A stretch of DNA of 63,818 nt, counting the filler, from Octopus bimaculoides (Eukaryota): the NCBI RefSeq assembly GCF_001194135.2. It is 7 parts of 7 records of this genome, joined end to end, with 100 filler letters (N's around TTAATTAATTAA, not from the genome) between each part and the next. Parts side by side here need not be neighbours in the genome. Positions count along the whole stretch, not along the records: positions 9,627 to 24,734 come from NC_068982.1; 6 more parts are not named here. The stretch is one strand, 5' to 3'. The notes below the pieces were generated by a model. The model was not told where the DNA came from, made no database searches, and saw nothing but the letters and a program-made list of their open reading frames with translations. A program made the translations under genes and the position numbers. Of this stretch, positions 9,627 through 23,839 are shown piece after piece (the stretch's first letter is position 1; the number at the start of each line of letters is the position of its first letter).

Positions 9627-9963
9627 GGTGTTTTCCCTATCTTCCTGTAGAAACTTTTGGGGTTATTTTTGAACATGTTATTATCTCGGAAAAATCTAAC
9701 ACGCTTTTCATACCTTGCTATGCGGGCAGCTTTAGCACATACCTTTTGCTTGATGGTTTCTATGGTGGCATCAATGTCAACTATGGTTTTCATATTATAT
9801 TTTTTCTTTAATTTATGGGTCTTTGTAGGTTTGATACTCTTGTCAAATTTAAGGTTTTTCAAACATTCTATGTCAGATCTAAGCAGCTTAATTTGGTGTT
9901 GAATGCGTTCTTGCCAAGAAGGTTTTTTGTGGGAGTGTTGTCTTTTTCTACCCTTTTCTTTTC

Positions 9964-9967
<4 letters not shown>
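9627..9967 (-). mobile_element. R4/Dong-type RLE LINE fragment A (pre-RT region)
   Basis: KPSWQERIQHQIKLLRSDI..LKKKYN..IETIKQKVCAKAARIARYEKRVRFFRDNNMFKNNPKSFY, homologous to the pre-RT part of fragment E (ORF 14385-15173). 5' junction abuts (ATT)n 9968-10037. Confidence 0.75.
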
Positions 9968-10039
<72 letters not shown>

Positions 10040-10277
10040 ACTACTACTATTATTATAACTACTACTATTATAACTATATACTATTATATATCTTTGCTTA
10101 CAGTTCCTAATGCACAATTATTATAGCCACAACCTTTACAGTTTTCATATCTCAAATTCTTGCAATTTCAAATTTTAAGGGATTGTATGTTTTTTGTTTT
10201 TCGTCTTTTTTCTTTATGATCCTGGAATCAAACAGACATGATGGATCAGCTAGTAAGCATTTGGTTATGTAAGCATA

Positions 10278-10630
10278 TTCTTATTTTCTAACTTCTTGTT
10301 CGTTTGAATAGGAAAGTCCCACAAAATCTTGCATTTTTCAACTCCAGCACACCTTCAACCCAATGATTGTACCATGTGTCTCCAGCTTCAAATTCTCATT
10401 TAGCTTCCAGTGTAAAACTTTTGCAGCTTTATCATGCCTCCATTTCTTATATTCTTCCTGTGCCAACTTGGAATATCCTGCAACAATGTGTGCCGCTGTC
10501 ACGGTCGAAATTCCACAGATTACATTTTTCTGACACATTTTTCTGACACATTTTCCCTCAAGTTGTTTGTTTTTATCGCTTGAACCTGGGCTGCTACAAT
10601 TAAGCTCTCTGTTTCTTTATTTAATCCCCC
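10278..10630 (-). mobile_element. R4/Dong-type LINE fragment B
   Basis: KETESLIVAAQVQAIKTN..HIVAGYSKLAQEEYKKWRHDKAAKVLHWKL..KILWDFPIQTN (degenerate zinc-knuckle region). Confidence 0.8.
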
Positions 10631-10634
10631 CCCA

Positions 10635-10848
10635 CTTAGCGACATTTCGTCTGTCTTTACGTTCTGAGTTCAGATTCCGCCGAGATCGACTTTGCCTTTC
10701 ATCTTTTCGGGGTCGATAAATTAAGTACCAGTGAAACAGTGGGTCGATGTAATCGACTGGTTCCCCCCACCAACATTTCAGGCCTTGTGCTTTTAGTAGA
10801 AAGGATTATTATTATTAGTATAATAAGGCGGCGAGCTGGCAGAATCGT
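10635..10848 (+). mobile_element. SINE family C body plus second head
   Basis: CATTTCGTCTGTCTTTACGTTCTGAGTTCAGATTCCGCCGAGATCGACTTTGCCTTTCATC..GTCGATAAATTAAGTACCAG..AGTAGAAAGGATTATT, then GGCGGCGAGCTGGCAGAATCGTT. Confidence 0.85.
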
Positions 10849-10849
10849 T

Positions 10850-12172
10850 CGGTCTTGTTTGTTCTGGGTGATTTGGGAGAGCGAACAGTAGCCTACTGTC
10901 AGAGCTCTCACAGGATTTCTTTCCGCACATTATAAGCTTTGATACTTGGTTGTTAACTATCGTGGGAGACATTCAACATCTAAGTACCAATCTCAAAATC
11001 TTAGCTGTTCCCAGTAGAGCAGTTTTTTGGGCTTGCTCTGTCAATTCCGATTTCTTTGACATATTTCTCGAACTTGGCTGTTAGTGCTCCGAGTGCTCCT
11101 ACAACTACTGGAATGACAGACGCTCTATTCATAGTCCACGTTCTTGTAATTTCGTCTTTTAGTAGTCTTTACTTTTCAGTCTTTTCTAGTTCTTTGTCAC
11201 TTATGCGTGCATTCCCAGCTATTGCAAAATCTATAATCTTGGTTTCCTTCTTCGCTTTATCTACCACAACAGTATCTGGTCTCCGATCATCGATTAGAGA
11301 GTCACACTAGATTGTAAAATCCCACAGTATCTTATATTACTTGTTCTCGGTGACTCTTTCTGTTTCATTTTCGTACCATTTCCGTGCTCTGTCTAGGCCG
11401 TACTTTTCACATAGCCTCCAGTGGACGAACTTAGTCACGTTATCGTGCCTCCTTTTGTAGTGCTTTTGGGCCAGATTGCTACACTCACTCACAATGTGTG
11501 AAATTGTTTCGTTTCTGCTGCCACACATCCTACAAAGGGGCGATTCGCTACTCTTATCTCTCTTATCTATTTGGAACTTGGTGTAATTAGTTCTTAGAGC
11601 TTGTTCCTGGGCGATGCATATCAATGCCTTAGTACATCCTTTCAGATCACTTTTTCTTAGCCATCTCCAAGTGTTGATCTTGTTTTTTCCTTCGATTTTT
11701 CTGAGGTATTGCACATGAGGTGGTTTCATTTTCCAGTTGTTTACTCTTTTTTCTTCATCTTGTTTCTTAAATGTTTGTGGGTGCATCACATTTTCGTAGG
11801 TATTGTTAATTCTAACAGCGGCAAGCAAGGACTCACTCTCCTCTTTGATGTACCATCCCAGACTGTTCTTCTCGCTGACAACACAAGTCTTGCATCCTAT
11901 GAGACCTCTTCCACCTCGGTTTCTAGGCACATACAGTCTGTCAGTATCGCTTTTGTGGATGTAGTTCCTTGTTAATTGTCCCCATTTTTCTAGTTTCCAT
12001 GTCTATTTCTTCAAACTCGTTCTTTGCCTACCTAACAACACCTGCGACATATCGCATTAAAGAAACAGCTCATGTGTTCATTGCTCTGGTTTTGCTTGTC
12101 CATTGAATCTACTTCTCATAATTAACTTGGTTCTTCTGAGATATTCTCACCTAATGCTTTCCTTCATTCCAC
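10850..12172 (-). mobile_element. R4/Dong-type LINE fragment C (3' 1.3 kb)
   Basis: ORF 11337-11930 has the CCHC knuckle CRMCGSRNETISHIVSEC. Downstream are the RLE motif RRPDTVVVDKAKKETKIIDFAIAG and the C-terminus ALLGTAKILRLVLRC*. Confidence 0.92.
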
Positions 12173-12198
12173 ATAACAACAACAACAACAACAACAAC

Positions 12199-12233
<35 letters not shown>

Positions 12234-12267
12234 TAGTAATAGTAATAATAATAATAAATATTATTAT

Positions 12268-12550
12268 AAGTTTGACTTGTTTTGTATTTGCACAAGTTGA
12301 ATCCCTGTCTCACCCAGAGATCTCAAGAGACAACAAGTTGGACATTCAAGTTGGTGTTTTGACTAGGGTGTCATATATTTGGTTTTGCACATAGTATTGT
12401 TCTGGAGAATGTTAAAGTAAAACATAAGAACATTTTAAGTTTATTTTAAAATTTGAGATTACACAGACAGTATTTTACGTAGGATATGGGCAGTTCCGAT
12501 GAGCACTATTTTTTGAATTTCTACCATTTTTGGATTTCCTGGTATCTGAG
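12268..12550 (-). mobile_element. R4/Dong-type LINE fragment D (3' end and UTR)
   Basis: QIPGNPKMVEIQKIVLIGTAHILRKILSV*, then a 3' UTR ending AAGTCAAAC(TAA). The same UTR occurs at 15842-15911 and 45881-46049. Confidence 0.85.
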
Positions 12551-12559
12551 CTATTATTA

Positions 12560-12636
<77 letters not shown>

Positions 12637-15420
12637 GCATTTACACAGCTTCTAACGCTGGAGATGTACTACGGTGTCAGCTGTTCACTACCAGTGAAGT
12701 AAAGTAACACCTGTTATTTTTCGAGCACCTTCTGGAGTATTCGAGCGTTTCCAAGCCGTGCTGTTTTCTGCAAGTGCTCCACCCTTATTACAGCTCTTAT
12801 TTGTTTCATGTACTTCTTGAGATTTTTACTCACTGTTCCCAGGGCTCTGACAATTATTGGTACCACTACCACCTTTTTCATCGACCACAACTGCTTTGCC
12901 TCCCAAGCTAACCTGTCAAATCTATCGACTTTTCTTTCTTCCTTATCGCATACCACATGTTCTTTGCATTATCATTTTCGATTATGCCTTCGGGTCGTAC
13001 CAATTTTTTGCTCTGTCAAGACCATACTTGTTGCAAAGCGTCCAATGGACAAGCCCTGCTATATTATCGTGACGTCTCTTATATTCCTTCTGGGCTAGTG
13101 GCATACATTGGCTGGTAATGTGCTATATAGTTTCACCATTTTGTCTACGGATTCTGCACTTATCACTTTCTGATGTGTTATCTACTTTGGATTTTATGTA
13201 GTTTGTTCTTAGTGCTTGCTCTTGGGCAGCACAGATTAGAGCTGCCGTTTCCGGTTATAAATCACTTTTAGTCATCCACAGCCATCTTTTTTCTCTGTCT
13301 TATTTTCAACACCCCTATGAAATTGTCCATGCATTCTTTTCTTTTCCCATCTATTTTCAGTTTCATTCGTTTTCAATTGCTTGTACAGTGTTTTTTTATC
13401 TTTGCAATCTACCATACTACACAAGCCTTACCTTCCCATTTCTAATAATAGCGGTTCTGTGGCATTTTTTACTCACCATGCGATGTTGTTTTCTTCTGCT
13501 CTAATGGTGTGTTCGCATCCAATCAATACTTACCCCACCTCTTTTTCTTGGTAAATATAGTCTGCCTGTGTCACTTTTTGATGGAGTGTTCCATATCTAG
13601 TTAGTAACTTCCCTGTCTTTCTGTCTAAGCTGTTTAGTTCTTCTACTGTCCATGCTCCCCTGCTCCATATCTGATGAGTGAAGCCGCTCAGGTGTTGACA
13701 GCTTCAATCTTATTCCGTCCTTTTAATTTCCACTTAAAGATCAGTCTCAGTCTGCGCAAGTACTTTACCTTAAATTTTTACGTCATTTCTTTCTCCATCA
13801 ATTTATCCATTTCCAAAATCCCCAAGTACTTATAGTCTATCTCTTCTATCTGCTTCATAACCTCCCCCGACGGTATCGGTAGCTCGTCCTTACATTTGAT
13901 TTTACCTCTCTTCAAGACTAACACACCACACTTTCTCAGTCCGAACTCCATTTTGATATCAACACTGAAAATATGCACTATATCAACGCTGGAACTGACT
14001 TGGGCTTCATCTTTACCATAACGTTTGAGGTCATCCATGAATAACAAATGGTTGACTTTTTGTTGGCGGCTTTTGAATACAAACCCAGCTTTTACTTTCC
14101 TCAGAATCAGTGTTAGTGGTATCAAGCACAGTACAAAGATCAGTGGGGACAGGCAGTCCCCTTGGAAGATGCCTCTCCTGATTTCTACTGGCCCTAAACT
14201 TCATCCGTATGCTGTCAGGTCCGTCTTCCAATTCGCCATACTTTTTCCAAGCAACCGCTCAACATTCGATGCAATACCAAATAGATTCATACATTCCATT
14301 ATCCAAGAATGTGGTATCATATCGTACGCCTTACGATAGTCGATCCATGACATGACTAAGTTAGTTTTCCTCCTCTTGCAGTCTCTAAGTACCTCTGCAA
14401 CCTTTCTGTTCATGTGGCAGGACTTTTTCCCCAGATGTTCGTACATTGACTCTGCGACTACTCCAGTCAATAATTTCCACATAAGTGGCAAACAGGATAT
14501 CGGCCTGTAATTGTCTGTGCTTGAAAACATCGAAAAAGGCAATACAGTGTAGTGCCTTTTTCGATGTTTTCAAGCACAGCATTGTCCTACCCAATGTCAA
14601 CCACTCTGGTGTTCCTTGGTCGGCATTTAACAAGGTGTTGAGTTGCGCCGCTATTTGTGCATGACATTCACCAAATCTTTTGATCCAGTAGCCTTGAACT
14701 CCATCGGGTCCTGGGGCCTTCAAGTTGCCCATTCTTTTACTGATTTCCTTCACTCCTCTAACTGAAATGACTAGTTCTGCTTGTTTTAGACAGACTACTG
14801 TATGTTTCAGTTCTTGCAACCATTCAGCATCCTTCTTGTGCTCCTTGTCTTTGCTCCAGATGTCACTCCAAAACCTTTGACCTTCATTGTTATCTGGTAC
14901 CAACTTTTCATCTGTACACTCTCCATATATTTCTTTATAGAATCTCTTCTGATCTACGCTGAATAACCTATTCTGGTGGTAACCCATCATTCTTTGGTCG
15001 TATCTTACCAGCTTTGTTTTCTCTGCAACGAGGCGCTGTTTCAGTTCTTCCATTACCACTTTCAGGCCCTTTCTTTCAATATTATACTTTCTTTTCAGCG
15101 CCCTGTATTTTTGTTCGCTTTTAAGCTCCCCTTTCTCTTTTCGGTCTAACACAGAAATTTCCTTCGAGAGCATATATTCTACCTGTATTCTTTTTTCTCA
15201 CCATTGGTCTTTTCTTTTGTCACTCCCATTATATTTCTTTTTCTTGATATCAACGCCCACATTTTCTGCTACAACAATACTTGCTGCCTTGATCAAATTA
15301 TTTGTTTCTGTGATGTTTGTTCTGATGTATTTCAGAATTTCATTGACATTTTTCGCTTCTTGGTTCAATTTCCACCGGTCAACCATTTTAAGGTTGCAAA
15401 TAATGTCGCTATCGTTCTCC
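12637..15420 (-). mobile_element. R4/Dong-type LINE fragment E (2.8 kb, RT to RLE, decayed)
   Basis: [77 protein letters not shown] (RT); ends LGNARILQKVLEK*. Several frameshifts. 3' end abuts (ATT)n ~12553-12636. Confidence 0.95.
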
Positions 15421-15746
15421 TGTCAAGTCGCAACAAGGACCTCAGGCAGACAGTACTTTACTCAATATGCGTGAAGTTCCAAGTAATGCCGACTTTTGCA
15501 ATACATCGAGATTGTAAGGTATTTCTAAGGCCTTCAGATGTTTTTTCTATCTGGAAGTCAAAGTCCCAGAGGATTTTTGTCTTCCCCTTTTCGTCCATTA
15601 CCTTTTCCAGAGTATGTTGGTACCAAGCACCCGTAAACTCATATCCATTCTTACGGCATAGTAGCCAGTGGAGGTTTTGGGCTACTTTATCGTGTCTACG
15701 CTTGTACTCATTCTGTGCAAGACTTTCACAAGCACTAACAATGTGA
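15415..15746 (-). mobile_element. R4/Dong-type LINE fragment F (internally deleted)
   Basis: THIVSACESLAQNEYKRRHDKVAQNLHWLLC..KILWDFDFQ joined almost directly to LQKSALLGTSRILSKVLSA*. 5' junction abuts (ATT)n 15747-15841. Confidence 0.85.
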
Positions 15747-15839
<93 letters not shown>

Positions 15840-15841
15840 TT

Positions 15842-17002
15842 ATGTTTGACTTTTGTTTTGCATTTGTACAAGTTGGATCCAAGTCTCACCCAGAGACCTC
15901 AAGAGACAACANNNNNNNNNNNNNNNNNNNNNNNNNNNNNNNNNNNNNNNNNNNNNNNNNNNNNNNNNNNNNNNNNNNNNNNNNNNNNNNNNNNNNNNNN
16001 NNNNNNNNNNNNNNNNNNNNNNNNNNNNNNNNNNNNNNNNNNNNNNNNNNNNNNNNNNNNNNNNNNNNNNNNNNNNNNNNNNNNNNNNNNNNNNNNNNNN
16101 NNNNNNNNNNNNNNNNNNNNNNNNNNNNNNNNNNNNNNNNNNNNNNNNNNNNNNNNNNNNNNNNNNNNNNNNNNNNNNNNNNNNNNNNNNNNNNNNNNNN
16201 NNNNNNNNNNNNNNNNNNNNNNNNNNNNNNNNNNNNNNNNNNNNNNNNNNNNNNNNNNNNNNNNNNNNNNNNNNNNNNNNNNNNNNNNNNNNNNNNNNNN
16301 NNNNNNNNNNNNNNNNNNNNNNNNNNNNNNNNNNNNNNNNNNNNNNNNNNNNNNNNNNNNNNNNNNNNNNNNNNNNNNNNNNNNNNNNNNNNNNNNNNNN
16401 NNNNNNNNNNNNNNNNNNNNNNNNNNNNNNNNNNNNNNNNNNNNNNNNNNNNNNNNNNNNNNNNNNNNNNNNNNNNNNNNNNNNNNNNNNNNNNNNNNNN
16501 NNNNNNNNNNNNNNNNNNNNNNNNNNNNNNNNNNNNNNNNNNNNNNNNNNNNNNNNNNNNNNNNNNNNNNNNNNNNNNNNNNNNNNNNNNNNNNNNNNNN
16601 NNNNNNNNNNNNNNNNNNNNNNNNNNNNNNNNNNNNNNNNNNNNNNNNNNNNNNNNNNNNNNNNNNNNNNNNNNNNNNNNNNNNNNNNNNNNNNNNNNNN
16701 NNNNNNNNNNNNNNNNNNNNNNNNNNNNNNNNNNNNNNNNNNNNNNNNNNNNNNNNNNNNNNNNNNNNNNNNNNNNNNNNNNNNNNNNNNNNNNNNNNNN
16801 NNNNNNNNNNNNNNNNNNNNNNNNNNNNNNNNNNNNNNNNNNNNNNTCCTTTGCCTGTTTTGTTACTGAGTAAGATGCTTTCTTGCTTTCATGTTTTGAG
16901 ACAAGTTTTAGCATCCAGTCCTCAGAGTTTTTCAGATAGGTGTCTAGGCCAATTGTGGCTACCTTCATTGTTAATGCCAGCTGTAGAAGTCCTCGGCCTC
17001 CC
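15842..17002 (-). mobile_element. R4/Dong-type LINE fragment G (spans gap)
   Basis: 5' part EGGRGLLQLALTMKVATIGLDTYLKNSEDWMLKLV. 3' UTR (15842-15911) matches fragment D. (ATT)n tracts on both sides. Confidence 0.8.
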
Positions 17003-17030
17003 TCTATTATTATTATTATTATTATTATTA

Positions 17031-17104
<74 letters not shown>

Positions 17105-17105
<1 letters not shown>

Positions 17106-17468
17106 GTCTTTATCTCTCGGTCTTAGGTGTTATACCGGTTTATTCTTCCGGATAGCAAGTCACATCCAGGGGCCCTTGGTACCCAGTACCATTTTTAAGA
17201 TTCTTGTTGTCCTCATTAGACAGACTTTCTGCATAACAGAAAAGTTTCTGTCGCAGCCAAAGTGTTCCTCGAATTTTTCGAAATTTCTGCTTACGGTACC
17301 CAACACATCGATGACAAATAGCATTGCCTTTTTACACTCTTACATTCCCATAACCGCCCAGTTTCGTATCTTATATCAATGTACTTACCAAACTTTTTTC
17401 TTCTCTTTTACTCTTGTATCAATAGGGTATGCTATATCCACTATTATACGTTCACGAGATGTTTTGAG
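17105..17468 (-). mobile_element. R4/Dong-type LINE fragment H (RLE C-terminus)
   Basis: IIVDIAYPIDTRVKEK..KYIDIRYE..RLWECK..MQKVCLMRTTRILKMVLGT. 3' end abuts (ATT)n 17003-17104. Confidence 0.8.
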
Positions 17469-17469
17469 C

Positions 17470-17800
17470 CGGTAGAATCGTTAGAATACCGGGCAAAATG
17501 CTTAGCGGCATTTCGTCCTGCTCGTTACGTTCTGAGTTCAAATATCACCGAGGTCGACTTTGCTTTTCATCCTTACGTGGTCGATGAAACACGTACCAGC
17601 TGAGCACAGTGAGTTGGCAGTACAGCGGCGAGCTGGCAGAAATGTTAGCACGCCGAAAAAAAAAATGCTTAGCGGCGTTTCTTTTGACTCTTTAAGTTCT
17701 GAGTTCAGATTCTGCCGAGGTTAATTTTGTTTGGGGTCAATGTAATTGACTAACTCCCTACTCTGAACTTGCTACCCTTGTGCCAAAATTTGAAACCATT
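17470..17800 (+). mobile_element. Two tandem SINE family C copies
   Basis: GTAGAATCGTTAGAATACCGGGCAAAATGCTTAGCGGCATTTCGTC.. and GCGGCGAGCTGGCAGAAATGTTAGCACGCCG.. with GTTCTGAGTTCA cores. Confidence 0.8.
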
Positions 17801-17824
17801 AGTATTATTATTTGATGAAAATTC

Positions 17825-18010
17825 TTGACTTATTTTGCTGGGTATGATGGAAAGTGTCAGCAGCCCACAGCCAACAGACTAAGGGGACACTTGTCTACTG
17901 GTCATGCTTCAAGAACCCTGCGAAGAATTCTTGTAGTTCCAAGCAATACTGTGTTTTGTAGGTGCTCTACTTTTACATTTGTACTATTCTTTATCAGCCA
18001 TGTCGGTAGC
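17825..18010 (-). mobile_element. R4/Dong-type LINE fragment I (extreme 3' end)
   Basis: Minus strand reads KVEHLQNTVLLGTTRILRRVLEA*. Confidence 0.75.
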
Positions 18011-18285
18011 TGAATGTTGATACGTATGCATTGTCGGAGCATACCAGTACATAGTTTTTACACAATATGTATTTAACTGTTGGTTTGGCAGTACGATTCA
18101 ACCCGATTCGGTTTGGGTACGTGACGTTGATAGACCATTAAAAATGTCGAAATCTCGATGTCCATCACTCGTGAACGGAATTTGGAGTGAGTTGTCTCGC
18201 TGCTTCTATTTCATATTTGAATATGTACACACACACACACGCGCGCGCGCGCGCATACACACGCACACACATACATACACACACA

Positions 18286-18317
<32 letters not shown>

Positions 18318-19497
18318 TATAAAAGGGAACAAAAGCGCAATAGAGGACAATAAAACATTCGGACAGATAGACGATACAAATGTGGACAGGAGAAACAACA
18401 ATTTGAAGGACAGGCAAAAAAAGACGGGTCATTCTTGGCCTTCTTTCTTCAGTGACGAGTTTCGGGCAGTTACACTTGAGACGGTTCGATCTGGTTGCCC
18501 CTCAAAAAGTCTAAGCTAAGGGCATTAAGAAAGCTAGCGAATGTGCACGGCAACAAAGACAAAAAAACGGAGAACATGGTACACAATTACAAACAAAAGG
18601 AAAATAACAACAGGTGTCTTTCGACTGAGAACGAATCAAATTGTGCTGGCGTGTATGAAGTGAAAGCTTAAAGGCAGGAACATAGGAGATGGACATAGGA
18701 GGTGTTGGTGGTCGGCAGTCAGGCCTAGAAGATAAATTTTGATATCAACAGCCGCATGACCTTCACCAAAAGAAAAAACACAAAAAAACTACGGAAGACC
18801 ACCAAGACTGCAACCACGGAAAACTACCAAGAGCCACGTGGAGATGAAATGGTTGTATTTCGACCGGGNNNNNNNNNNNNNNNNNNNNNNNNNNNNNNNN
18901 NNNNNNNNNNNNNNNNNNNNNNNNNNNNNNNNNNNNNNNNNNNNNNNNNNNNNNNNNNNNNNNNNNNNNNNNNNNNNNNNNNNNNNNNNNNNNNNNNNNN
19001 NNNNNNNNNNNNNNNNNNNNNNNNNNNNNNNNNNNNNNNNNNNNNNNNNNNNNNNNNNNNNNNNNNNNNNNNNNNNNNNNNNNNNNNNNNNNNNNNNNNN
19101 NNNNNNNNNNNNNNNNNNNNNNNNNNNNNNNNNNNNNNNNNNNNNNNNNNNNNNNNNNNNNNNNNNNNNNNNNNNNNNNNNNNNNNNNNNNNNNNNNNNN
19201 NNNNNNNNNNNNNNNNNNNNNNNNNNNNNNNNNNNNNNNNNNNNNNNNNNNNNNNNNNNNNNNNNNNNNNNNNNNNNNNNNNNNNNNNNNNNNNNNNNNN
19301 NNNNNNNNNNNNNNNNNNNNNNNNNNNNNNNNNNNNNNNNNNNNNNNNNNNNNNNNNNNNNNNNNNNNNNNNNNNNNNNNNNNNNNNNNNNNNNNNNNNN
19401 NNNNNNNNNNNNNNNNNNNNNNNNNNNNNNNNNNNNNNNNNNNNNNNNNNNNNNNNNNNNNNNNNNNNNNNNNNNNNNNNNNNNNNNNNNNNNNNNN

Positions 19498-19564
<67 letters not shown>

Positions 19565-19566
<2 letters not shown>

Positions 19567-19780
19567 GTACAGCTCTTTGTACTTGTCTCCATACCGCTCG
19601 AAAACCGTTGTTGGTGTGTGTATGTCTCCGTAACATACCATTTTGACACAAGCGTCCGATGGAACAATCACAAGACTTTAAAAAAATAAGTGTTGGGTCA
19701 ATTTGTTTAGCTCAACCTTTATAGGTTGTGCTCCAGCATGGCCCTACTCCAACGACTGAAACAAGCGAAACAATAAATAC
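19565..19780 (+). mobile_element. Diverged SINE family B 3' half after (GT)n
   Basis: GTGTATGTCTCCGTAAC..GTGCTCCAGCATGGCC..ACTGAAACAAG following the (GT)n tract 19498-19563. Confidence 0.7.
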
Positions 19781-20268
19781 GAAGAACGTACTTTGGGTAG
19801 GCCATACTGCCAGTAAAATCACATGCACTGGTTATGCTTCACTAAAGTTTCATTACAATTCAATAAGCTAATTAATCAATTGGTTAATCGATAAGTTTGT
19901 GAAAGTCCTTTCGTTACAGATTTTGATCTTATCACAAGACCAGTGCGATGATCAGTAAACGTGCAATAAATTGCTGAGGAGAAAGAGAAGATTGAAGGAC
20001 ACAATCATTGATAAGGTCCCAAACTGTGACGTAAGGATTTTGGCAGACTAATTGATCAATTAATTGGTCAAATGGTTAAATATTTCACTGATCGGTAATA
20101 AAACTGAAGTGACATATAATCAGTACGTGTGTTTTTATTGGTGCACGACCTTCCCAAAATACATCAATATCAGGTTCGACGCACATTTTCGCATGAAGAA
20201 TATTCTAAAACAAATACAATTAAGTATCTTTAATCTGCTGTGTTTTCTTTTTCTTCTCTCTTTTCTAG

Positions 20269-20411
20269 TGAATAATAATGAATGCCAACAGGCTTCTTGT
20301 ATGTGTGACAAAACAGCAGCGATGTGCTTCCGTGATCATCTGTCTGATTACAAGGAATCGAACCAATCACAATTAGGTAAAATACTAGGTGGCCTTTTCA
20401 AACATCGCTGA
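20269..20411 (+). CDS. Terminal exon of a secreted phospholipase A2 (group I/II-like sPLA2)
   Basis: Strong polypyrimidine acceptor TTTTCTTTTTCTTCTCTCTTTTCTAG (AG at 20267-20268), phase 1. Reads (V)NNNECQQASCMCDKTAAMCFRDHLSDYKESNQSQLGKILGGLFKHR*. The C-xxx-x-C-x-C-D-xx-AA-x-C-F pattern is the sPLA2 helix carrying the catalytic Asp99 equivalent, and vertebrate sPLA2 genes also begin their last exon here in phase 1. Confidence 0.82.
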
Positions 20412-20483
20412 AAATTTATTTTGCTCCGGCCAACTCAGCACTATTTTTTCATCAACTGTTTTTGCAATTTATAGTAAATCGCC

Positions 20484-20489
20484 AATAAA
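20484..20489 (+). terminator. Candidate polyadenylation signal of the PLA2-like gene
   Basis: AATAAA 73 nt after the stop codon, with a second at ~20506. Common by chance in AT-rich DNA. Confidence 0.35.
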
Positions 20490-20679
20490 ACAAGAAACTG
20501 AGAAAAATAAAAAAGCAGTCATCATTGCAACATTTCCTCATGTTGTTGTTGATGTTTTCTGTCAAATTAACCGTCATAGGATATACTTATAATCAAAGGA
20601 AATCCTGCTGTGACAATCCCGTCATTTATTTTTCAGACAAGGGTATTTTTTATCTTTTACTTGTTTATAATCTCAGACA

Positions 20680-21070
20680 TTGAACTGCAGCCATGCTGGA
20701 GTATCGTTTTGATGAGTGTTCATTGAACAAAAACACCCCAGTACATGTTGTTATACCGAACCACAAAGTTACGAGGACGTAAACAAACGAACACCGGTTG
20801 TCAAACGGTTTGGGGAACAAATACGAACACAAAGACACGCACTCATAAATATAAACAAATACATATACTCCCTATGTACAAACATACACACACACATATA
20901 TACATACATATATATGTATATGTATATATATATATATGTTAGGTGTTTTTTAGTTTCCGTCTGCCAAATCCATTTACATGGCTTTTGTCGGCTCGTGCTT
21001 ACTGTAGAAGACACTTGCCCAAGGTGCCACGCTGTGAGACTGAACCTAAAACCATGTGGTCGGGGTTCTT
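20680..21070 (-). mobile_element. SINE family B, near full length, with internal microsatellite
   Basis: Reverse of tail (GCAGCCATGCTGGAG), core (GGACGTAAAC..CCGGTTGTCAA), (CA/TA)n and head (GAAGACACTTGCCCAAGGTGCCACGC). Confidence 0.85.
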
Positions 21071-21164
21071 CCTTTGAGTTGAGAAATTTGGCTGCTATTT
21101 CTAGATGACTGAGCGCCTACGTACAACCACCTTCGTTGAATTATTTTCTTGTTGACGTTAGAAT

Positions 21165-21340
21165 CATTAGCGCGTCGCTGAAAATGGTTAGCAGCATTTT
21201 TTCCGGTTCAGAATTCAAATCTCGTTGAGGTCAACTTTAACCTTTCATCCTTTCAGAGTCGATAAAATGAAGTACAAGTGAAGAACTATGGTCGATATAA
21301 AAGCTCCCATTGAAGCTGCTAGTCCTGTACCAAAATTAAA
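21165..21340 (+). mobile_element. SINE family C, diverged
   Basis: GGTTAGCAGCATTT..GTTCAGAATTCAAATCTCGTTGAGGTCAACTTTAACCTTTCATCCTTTCAGAGTCGATAAAATGAAGTAC. Confidence 0.7.
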
Positions 21341-22574
21341 AGCAATTATCAAATTACATTTGTGCAGTACATCCATCCTTATTTATTACTGTTTCATTCA
21401 AACTCATCTGGGATAACACGGTGCGCTCAATTGTGCCCCATGTTTCACTTATCACGGATTAATCTGTGATAACATGGGTTTGCAATCAGTCATAGCTTCT
21501 ATTTGAACCACAAAAGTGGGGCCCCGCGATCATCCACAATGCGTAGAATTGTTTATCACCCGTGTTTACATCACCGTGCTGCGGAACTGCATACTTTTCT
21601 ATGCGGATTTACGTACACATAGCCATCCACATGAGGAATATAAATAGAAAAAAGTATTTTTCGTCGTTATATTCTTATCATTTACTGACCATATGTTACT
21701 AAATTTTACTCTAAATATCAATCCAACTATGTAACATTATCTATCCATCTGTGTAACATTGTGTATTTAAAAAACTGTTTGGAGGTATTATTTGGTTAAG
21801 TTTCTTGTGGAAGAGCTTGTGGTCTCGTATTGAAACCTACTTTTCCAATGTGCTTGATTCATTTATCAATACTTCATTTAACACGGTGTTATTATTTTGT
21901 TTTAACCAAACACCCGTGGTAAATAAGGATAGAAGTACATTATAGTTTAGGGAACACAACAGTATCATTTGGAGACAGTAGACTAACATTTGAAATATCT
22001 GTTTGTACCTGACCAGGTTGTGTTTATGACCAAGAAACATAACTCATGAATGACTAACTGTTGTCTGTTGTAGTTGTTGTTTAGCCCCAGGTCGGCTCTG
22101 ATCGAGCAAACTTATGATCAAAGTTATTTCACTCGTGACCGTTTTATCAAAGATTACAGTCTTTATTGAGGACAGTAGAATGAGAATTAGCTGCCATTTC
22201 TAGCAGGTCGGGGCTTCTTCCTTTGAAAGTTGGGTAAACCGTATATAGAAATGAATGAATATAGTAAACACCAGCAACAACATGAACGACATGAATAAAC
22301 AATGTCAGTTGAAAAAAAAGGAAAATATCAACATCTCGAGCAAATGCCTTTTTCAAGACAACAAAGAAAGAAATGAGAAAATACGAAGAAAAATTTCTGT
22401 TACTTAAGAACAACAGATGACTGCTTTGAGGACCCCCACCCCTGCCCCGCCTATCCCGTTGAGATCATGTAAAATGGACGAGTAAAGAGGAAGAGTGCCG
22501 ACTTCAGCTAATCATCCTTTCTGCCAAAGAACCAGAGACAAAGATAAGTAATTTCAATGTTTAGCATCGTATAA

Positions 22575-22775
22575 GGCGGCTAGCTGGCAGACTCGTTTGT
22601 AAGCCGGGCAAAATGCTTAGCAACATTTCATCCTGCTCTTTACGTTCTGAGTTCAAATTCCGCCGGGGTTGACTTTGCATTTCATCTTTTCGGGGTCAAT
22701 AAAATAAGTACCAGTTGAGCGCTGGAGTCAATGTAATCGAAACTGCTGGCCTTGTATCAAAATTTGAAATCATTA
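22575..22775 (+). mobile_element. SINE family C
   Basis: AAGGCGGCTAGCTGGCAGACTCGTT..GGGCAAAATGCTTAGC..GTTCTGAGTTCAAATTCCGCCGGGGTTGACTTTGC. Confidence 0.85.
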
Positions 22776-23201
22776 TGCCTTGTAAATAGTCTATCAACCT
22801 GCCTCACATCAAACTTGCTACCTACAACTATCATTCGAATGCAAAGTTTATCACATTCGGTGATGAGACGGCGACGGTGCATAGTATTAAAGTAGGCTGG
22901 TTATGGTTTGGTGTAGTGCAGTAGGGTGTATTTAATTAATTGAATTTATTTCATCACTTTAAACGTCTGTATAGAGCTGGTAAGATTGAAAGAAGGTATG
23001 TAGTAACCGTTAGACAAATAAACTATAAGTAAAAACCACGATAATTAGAAAGAAAATAAAGGAGAAACGTTTCTACATTGTTAAATATTTATGCGGTTTC
23101 CGTCAAATGGAAGATCTTATTTAAGGCTAGAAATTCATTAGAAACAACTTACACCTTCGGCTTTGGAAGGCTTTTAAAGACCATTTAAAAAAATGTCCCC
23201 A

Positions 23202-23262
<61 letters not shown>

Positions 23263-23839
23263 ACTGGTAATTTCTGCACTGGAGCAAATGAAGTGTAACG
23301 TGTAGTGACCTGTAATGTAGAGACGCAAACTGCAACGTGGCGGTGAGACGTGAACTGAAACGTTGCGGTGATATTTAATGCGGTATATTGCCATATGAAA
23401 TGCAGTAAAATATATATTATAATAAATTGTAGTGAAAATGGTTGTTGTGGTTTAACAGGGCAATCTCGATCGCACACAACTATTGTCAAAATGGCATTCT
23501 AGCCTTGACCATTCCATCTTTTAAGGAGTATCGAAGACTAAGTGATCCAACGAATCCTTTTCTTAGCTGAGATTTGGGTTCTACTTTTAGAAAGTCGAGC
23601 GCCGGTGAAGAGGATCTCTGTCGTGTTAAATAGTGAACTGGGAAATGACTGGCAAATGCTGTAGAAGAGTGTAGAATAATATATAGAGTAATGTAGACTA
23701 GTGAGGTATAGGGCAATGTAAAATAGTGTAGTATGATGAATTATTCAATACTTCATAGTACACTCCAATACAGTAGAATGACATGTAGCGCGCATGCTTG
23801 ACTCTAGACGACCTAAATAGGTTTTTTGTTTTGTTAAAC

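Follow-up and report, generated by a model that had tools for sequence, protein, structure and literature searches.

Among the closest described relatives of the octopus gene analyzed here are those that encode the secreted phospholipases A2 (sPLA2s) of groups I, II and V from vertebrates and snake venoms. The octopus protein has the same fold as these enzymes, the same Ca2+ loop, the His48-Asp49 pair, Asp99 and, as predicted from its cysteines, the five core disulfides; its N-terminal helix likewise follows directly after a KR site, and its C-terminal extension of about 7 residues is similar in length to that of group II sPLA2s. It differs from the vertebrate and snake venom proteins in that the Cys27-Cys126 disulfide kept by these groups is absent, as are the disulfides of group I (11-77) and group II (50-C-terminus), and in that its last exon is present in two alternative copies. 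Snake venom PLA2 coding exons evolve faster than introns and UTRs, and one of the two octopus last exons, exon 4b, is likewise more divergent than its flanks (89.3% vs. 94.7% identity between species); the octopus effect, however, concerns one exon of one gene in one species pair.

sPLA2s are known cephalopod proteins and have been reported from the posterior salivary glands of coleoids (PMC7693380; bioRxiv 10.64898/2026.04.09.716377). The window that we analyzed, a stretch of 63,818 nucleotides of Octopus bimaculoides DNA including filler, holds an exon that an earlier note had described as the orphan terminal exon of such an enzyme. Our analysis indicates that it is very probably the distal one of two tandem-duplicated alternative last exons in a four-exon, Ca2+-dependent sPLA2 gene of the group I/II type. 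This exon is already part of RefSeq models in three Octopus species, and as a gene the locus offers nothing new; it does provide modest points for research on cephalopod venoms or on how sPLA2s evolved, among them two small features that have gone undiscussed, the conserved duplication of the last exon and the faster evolution of exon 4b. Three aspects are of interest: the two conserved last exons would give the protein a different helix 3, a different interfacial C-terminal surface and charge, and a glycosylation sequon at another position; Octopus and Lingula have in common a predicted five-disulfide framework from which both sides of the Cys27-Cys126 pair have been lost; and the sPLA2 reported from salivary proteomics is a neighboring paralogue and not the product of the window gene.

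The window exon belongs to an intact four-exon sPLA2 gene

When the exon 4b peptide was run exhaustively with HMMER against 1.84 billion representative proteins, three matches emerged: a 155-residue Octopus PLA2 (P0001; E=1e-15, 78% identity over the whole exon, tail included), an Octopus paralogue (P0002; 47% identity to the peptide), and a reptile double-domain PLA2 (P0003). P0001 shares its 90% cluster with two O. bimaculoides proteins, XP_014780847.1 (isoform X1, P0008) and XP_014780878.1 (isoform X3, P0010), both of which end in exactly the 46 residues of the exon 4b peptide; these are products of the same gene as the window exon, with no difference between them and it. Their orthologues, XP_029658029.1 of O. 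sinensis and CAI9717503.1 of O. vulgaris, are 76-78% identical over the exon, again including the tail. By a word-indexed search, no homologue was found for the 46-residue peptide, and full-length P0008 retrieved its own cluster only. The RefSeq name of these proteins, basic phospholipase A2 Ts-G6D49 isoform X1/X3, is an automatic snake-toxin best-match label and is functionally uninformative.

In a blastn comparison, the window piece from 9627 to 24734 corresponded with 100% identity, N gaps included, to positions 30504-45611 of L001 (CM046602.1:78,915,534-78,966,821 of assembly GCA_001194135.2), the genomic record of P0008. Since the piece equals O. bimaculoides chromosome CM046602.1 and the peptide equals a RefSeq C-terminus, exon 4b is already annotated. 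The exon map in Table 1 was obtained by tblastn of the isoforms onto L001. It places exons 1-3, which include the Ca2+ loop YGKWCGFGG (exon 2) and the catalytic CCRNHDHCY (exon 3), 21.9-31 kb upstream of exon 4b and more than 11 kb past the left edge of the piece. Within the readable part of the piece, neither a motif scan nor tblastn with full-length relatives revealed a further PLA2 exon (best, spurious, E=0.03). The earlier note had remarked that no YGCxCG or CCxxHDxCY exon is visible upstream and had considered that the missing exons might lie beyond the window. Both observations proved right: the piece contains no such exon because exons 1-3 lie outside it, further upstream on the same chromosome. 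The label "orphan", in contrast, has to be given up, since the exon is part of an intact, RefSeq-annotated gene; its isolated appearance in a piece of 15 kb is expected because the preceding intron is 22 kb long.

Table 1. Features of the window gene, its two last exons and its surroundings
Feature	Window position	Position in other record	Strand	Remarks
Exon 1		L001 10001-10048		Signal peptide
Exon 2		L001 about 17578-17730		Propeptide ending KR, N-terminal helix, Ca2+ loop YGKWCGFGGSG
Exon 3		L001 19127-19253		CCRNHDHCY active site and beta-wing; ends TGT T/gtaagt
Exon 4a		L001 22159-22301		Alternative last exon
Exon 4b	20269-20411	L001 41146-41288	+	Distal alternative last exon; phase 1, 46 codons, TGA
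Distal intron 3 (X1/X3 transcript)	9627-20268		+	No PLA2 coding sequence; N gaps 15912-16846 and 18869-19497
3' splice site of exon 4b	20230-20268		+	Read from the sequence; AG at 20267-20268
Short 3' UTR	20412-20510		+	AATAAA 20484-20489, 73 nt past the stop
Duplication block 1	20147-20645	L001 22040-22569	+	blastn, 79% over 535 columns
Duplication block 2, downstream of the exon	21317-22104	L001 22812-23581	+	blastn, 78.5% over 808 columns
Exon 4a, O. vulgaris		L002 22431-22573		
Exon 4b, O. vulgaris		L002 33793-33941		
Paralogue gene (XP_014780833.1)		L003, CM046602.1:78,970,488-78,985,940	reverse	Tail-to-tail with the window gene
Degenerate LINE remnants	11340-15173		minus	In the intron
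RVT_1 reverse-transcriptase fragment	14204-14542		minus	Pfam E=5.5e-9, stop-broken
zf-RVT-like fragment	11340-11930		minus	Stop-broken
Second retrotransposon copy		L001 14435-15867		87-89% identical
SINE-like dispersed repeat	10654-10732, 17467-17605, 17662-17732, 22582-22720			About 80-140 nt, 76-91%
Microsatellites	9966-10087, 12175-12257, 12552-12636, 15748-15843			
Microsatellites	17005-17105, 18227-18317, 19498-19564, 24680-24734			

Use of the acceptor at 20268/20269 is predicted by the NCBI Gnomon models of O. bimaculoides and O. sinensis and by the O. vulgaris annotation; a search of a contig index for transcripts encoding the exact protein returned the genome record alone. Judged by its complete set of catalytic residues, the octopus PLA2 would be a catalytically active sPLA2. 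A further predicted isoform, X4 (XP_052834342.1, 111 residues), terminates in a mini exon outside the window (L001 20819-20835; ...FYTFI-stop); without helix 3, it is probably non-functional or splicing noise.

Exon 4b supplies helix 3 and the C-terminal end of a secreted PLA2

Exon 4b opens with the remainder of a split codon, TG at 20269-20270, and is then translated from 20271 as NNNECQQASCMCDKTAAMCFRDHLSDYKESNQSQLGKILGGLFKHR, followed by the TGA at 20409-20411. It is in phase 1, since the frame from 20269 runs into stops; the earlier note had given both ends of the exon exactly, but 20269 itself is out of frame. The polypyrimidine tract (20240-20266) lies directly before the acceptor AG, and together with the TGA it supports the description of acceptor and stop as clean. 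The A at 20233, in the context TTAAT, is a candidate branch point.

Pfam profile PF00068 matches the exon 4b peptide alone with E=1.3e-4 (22.8 bits). This score falls under the curated gathering cut-off of 32.1 bits because the fragment spans no more than positions 82-108 of the 110 in the profile; full-length P0008, exon 4b included, passes the cut-off with 103 bits (E=1.7e-29). The peptide also matches 140 solved PLA2 chains (best E=1.6e-5), and its likeness to PLA2s is well beyond chance. The earlier note had named the absence of a PLA2 profile match among the findings that would speak against a terminal exon of an sPLA2; instead, this proposal is borne out by PF00068, by the solved chains and by the identity with the RefSeq C-terminus.

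Specifically, exon 4b contributes helix 3 and the C-terminal segment to a group I/II-type sPLA2, and with them, in the standard numbering, Cys91, Cys96, Cys98, Asp99, and Cys105. The helix 3 motif C-x-C-D (Asp99), followed by A-A-x-C-F, is present as SCMCDKTAAMCF (window 20298-20333), and the motif column is invariant across 63 aligned PLA2s.

A cysteine framework without Cys27 and Cys126

The translation of exon 4b contains no cysteine after the Cys105 of its CF motif, in agreement with the Cys-free tail that the earlier note had described. Cys27, the partner of Cys126 in the Ca2+ loop, is a Lys in the octopus protein (YGKWCG, exon 2), which consequently does not possess the Cys27-Cys126 disulfide of groups I, II, V, and X. 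We surveyed the cysteines of 149 PLA2 domains from 129 retrieved proteins. Cys27 was missing from 11 of these domains, which are exactly those of Octopus (both paralogous genes) and of two Lingula anatina proteins; all 11 were also devoid of any tail cysteine, as compared to a single one of the 138 domains with Cys27. The tail is hence Cys-free because its disulfide partner has been lost as well, a paired loss of 27-126.

Ten cysteines remain in the protein, four of them supplied by exon 4b, and, when aligned to the standard numbering, these would be expected to form the five core disulfides 29-45, 44-105, 51-98, 61-91, and 84-96. To our knowledge, this five-disulfide framework is found in no numbered vertebrate sPLA2 group, and the paired loss of 27-126 makes the octopus protein a member of the PLA2 superfamily that fits none of these groups. 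With Cys27-Cys126 lost on both sides, the C-terminal segment is untethered from the Ca2+ loop. Neither a review of centipede venom PLA2s nor a paper on coleoid venom evolution offered details of the cysteine framework.

L. anatina XP_013415887.1 (42-45% identical) resembles the octopus protein in its YGNWCG loop without Cys27 and in its Cys-free tail, NQGLLSNLFGK, but this tail is shorter and has no extension of the GGLFKHR type. Two brachiopod sPLA2s, the L. anatina proteins P0035 and P0129, have lost Cys27 together with Cys126 as in Octopus, and the shared loss suggests an old lophotrochozoan lineage of five-disulfide sPLA2s and not an octopus novelty. The list from our profile search was biased to vertebrates, P0003 having been included; PLA2s of squid and cuttlefish were not recovered by it, and the informative invertebrate additions were Lingula and one ENA protein.

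The C-terminal tail and the question of a salivary function

In an alignment with other sPLA2s, the stretch that follows Cys105 can be matched residue by residue to the canonical C-terminal segment of PLA2s. The usual Cys126 aligns at about the Leu of KIL, and the extension beyond it consists of the 7 residues GGLFKHR. An AlphaFold2 model computed with a 63-sequence alignment has a confident PLA2 core (mean pLDDT 84.6, pTM 0.77) and matches the structures of human group IIE, V, and IIA, snake, and pancreatic PLA2s (TM to target 0.80-0.89); it contains a short helix at 141-149 (pLDDT about 75), and its last three residues fall below 50. A C-terminus rich in Leu/Ile/Phe and Lys would aid membrane docking, and by comparison with the known interfacial surfaces of sPLA2s, a role in interfacial binding may reasonably be supposed for this hydrophobic-basic end. 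O. bimaculoides exons 4a and 4b both end ...HR; in O. vulgaris, the stop of exon 4b is shifted and the tail is 2 residues longer. Several related proteins end in Gly, namely P0001 (exon 4b of O. vulgaris and O. sinensis; ...KHHHG), P0002 (...KFASG), and P0015 (...HKITG), and this residue could be a donor for C-terminal amidation.

The earlier note had interpreted the tail as a cationic amphipathic helix and had raised the possibility of a salivary (venom) or digestive PLA2, a reading under which the C-terminal peptide might disrupt membranes in the manner of the snake Lys49 myotoxins. We regard this as quite doubtful. The last 12 residues of the tail do carry a charge of +3 with no acidic residue, AlphaFold2 places its short helix at 141-149, the 11-residue window QLGKILGGLFK reaches a helical moment of 0.59, and exon 4b outdiverges its flanks (see below), as is common in venom genes. 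These features are set against a net charge of +2 over the 26 residues past Cys105, a slightly acidic predicted mature protein (pI 6.35; 5.92 for the exon 4a isoform), and a Gly-Gly pair in the middle of the proposed helix. Moreover, shuffled sequences do as well in helical moment as the 12- and 14-residue tails: the Eisenberg moment of LGKILGGLFKHR is 0.30, a value reached by 55% of the shuffles, and that of SQLGKILGGLFKHR is 0.295, reached by 46%. What stands of the proposed helix is thus the basic character of the last 12 residues and the helical prediction for 141-149, but not a cationic and amphipathic peptide in terms of net charge and of a moment above that given by composition.

The reports of sPLA2s from coleoid posterior salivary glands are the remaining point in favor of a salivary role, and the O. 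vulgaris data bear on it directly. The only sPLA2 in the salivary proteome of this species ("same and unique", group 434) has XP_014780833.1 as its best match, with 73.7% identity (PMC7693380, supplement file 4). XP_014780833.1 is the paralogue P0015. It shares 72% identity with its orthologue in O. sinensis and O. vulgaris, P0002, whereas the orthologue of the window gene would be expected to match XP_014780847.1 at about 87%. Because group 434 at 73.7% fits XP_014780833.1, the published salivary evidence concerns the neighboring paralogue; the O. vulgaris proteome entry is of the paralogue type and does not amount to a salivary gland detection of the window gene, to which the earlier idea had been applied.

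The gene for this paralogue is convergent with the window gene, its 3' end lying 15.7 kb past that of the latter. Its product (XP_036356061.1 in O. sinensis, CAI9717501.1 in O. vulgaris) is 46-48% identical to that of the window gene, with which it shares the four-exon layout, a YG[KR]WCG loop without Cys27, and a Cys-free HQSF-GKL tail. It differs from the window gene in having a single last exon and a shorter tail ending in Gly, and in the proteomic evidence for salivary gland expression that exists for its type.

Two alternative last exons conserved between octopus species

Isoform X2 of O. bimaculoides (XP_014780854.1, P0009) ends in a homologous but different set of 46 residues, NSDECQQATCMCDKKASICFYNHLIEYNESNQLPFSKLIGGLFNHR, which is encoded by exon 4a. 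The predicted isoforms of both O. bimaculoides (X1/X3 with exon 4b, X2 with exon 4a) and O. sinensis (X1/X2 with exon 4b, X3 with exon 4a) fall into the same two types. Exon 4b is located about 19 kb (18.9 kb) downstream of exon 4a, and in the predicted isoforms both are joined to the common donor of exon 3. They have equal phase, the same acceptor context, and each its own stop and AATAAA, as alternative last exons should. The 40 nt upstream of the exon are near-identical at 4a, at 4b, and in O. vulgaris. Two blocks of similarity (Table 1) show that exons 4a and 4b lie in a stretch of at least 2 kb that has been duplicated in tandem; the first block takes in the exon, its UTR, and about 120 nt of intron.

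In O. vulgaris, the locus is free of gaps (L002, OX597815.1) and has the same five coding exons, and exons 4a and 4b are intact in both species, with AATAAA conserved at both last exons. Exon 4a of O. bimaculoides is 95% identical to its O. vulgaris orthologue and exon 4b is 89% identical to its own, as compared to 78-80% for the paralogous pair 4a/4b; since orthologous exons are closer than paralogous ones, the duplication is older than the split of these two species. An N-glycosylation sequon is present in each exon, N-Q-S in 4b and, three residues earlier, N-E-S in 4a, and each of them is conserved in both species. Depending on which last exon is chosen, helix 3 would present a different surface, the interfacial binding face would differ in its C-terminal part, and the charge (exon pI 7.9 for 4b vs. 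6.0 for 4a) and the placement of the N-glycosylation sequon would change as well.

Exon 4b appears to evolve faster than its flanks

We estimated substitution rates between O. bimaculoides and O. vulgaris by the method of Nei and Gojobori. Exons 2 and 3 together gave a dN of 0.025 and a dS of 0.161 (dN/dS 0.16), exon 4a a dN of 0.060 and a dS of 0.021 (dN/dS 2.88, from 7 substitutions in total), and exon 4b a dN of 0.111 and a dS of 0.146 (dN/dS 0.76). Identity between the species is 89.3% in the coding part of exon 4b and 94.7% over about 680 nt of its intron, UTR, and downstream flanks, a difference for which Fisher's exact test gives weak evidence (p=0.02) from 15 substitutions in one species pair. 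No excess divergence over the flanks was found for exon 4a (p=0.84), and exons 2-3 did not show the effect either. A similar pattern is seen between the paralogous exons 4a and 4b, in which the 100 nt of preceding intron are 85.6% and the UTR 89% identical, with a lower value of 80% for the coding part; their dN/dS is about 0.5, and all cysteines as well as Asp99 are retained. The divergence of exon 4b is suggestive of diversifying selection, with few substitutions from a single species pair to go by, and its interspecies dN/dS of 0.76 could partly reflect relaxed constraint.

It is possible, albeit in our judgment unlikely, that this sPLA2 gene varies the membrane-facing C-terminal half of its product by means of duplicated last exons and not by duplicating the whole gene, with exon 4b under positive selection and the untethered C-terminus permitting the swap. 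If true, this would be an exon-level counterpart to the accelerated evolution of venom PLA2 gene families.

The same rates could be read as decay. Exon 4b would then be a decaying copy of exon 4a that is not used, a pseudo-exon attached to the gene by prediction programs only because its frame is still open. It evolves about twice as fast as the non-coding flanks and outpaces exons 2-3 in both dN and dN/dS, and the original gene model of 2015 (UniProt A0A0L8IC38, P0009) had exon 4a only. Neutral decay, however, predicts a divergence equal to that of the flanks and not above it. The frame, the four cysteines, Asp99, the acceptor, the stop region, and the AATAAA are intact in two species, and this despite a duplication so old that nucleotide divergence has reached 20%; the N-Q-S sequon has been kept, the dN/dS between the paralogous exons is about one half, and independent annotations in three Octopus species put exon 4b into the main isoform. 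We therefore consider decay of exon 4b very improbable. The chance that the exon is a true orphan, i.e., all that is left of a separate PLA2 gene after the loss of its other exons, is practically nil: its sole support is that the 15 kb piece holds no other PLA2 exon, and it is ruled out by exons 1-3 upstream on the same strand, by an exon 3 donor whose phase fits exactly, its last T and the TG at 20269-20270 restoring the Leu codon that precedes NNN in the annotated protein, and by the same layout in O. vulgaris.

Repeats in the intron and the flanks

The distal intron 3 of the window gene contains degenerate remnants of non-LTR retrotransposons (LINEs), including fragments of reverse-transcriptase and zf-RVT-like domains, and a second copy of the retrotransposon resides further upstream in the same gene. 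A SINE-like dispersed repeat occurs at four places in the piece (Table 1). Scans of the piece from 9627 to 24734 for tRNAs and Rfam families gave no match. Long trinucleotide (TTA/TAT/AAT) and dinucleotide (AC/TG) microsatellites adjoin most of the gap edges, the right edge of the piece among them, and the assembly gaps are probably unresolved microsatellites.
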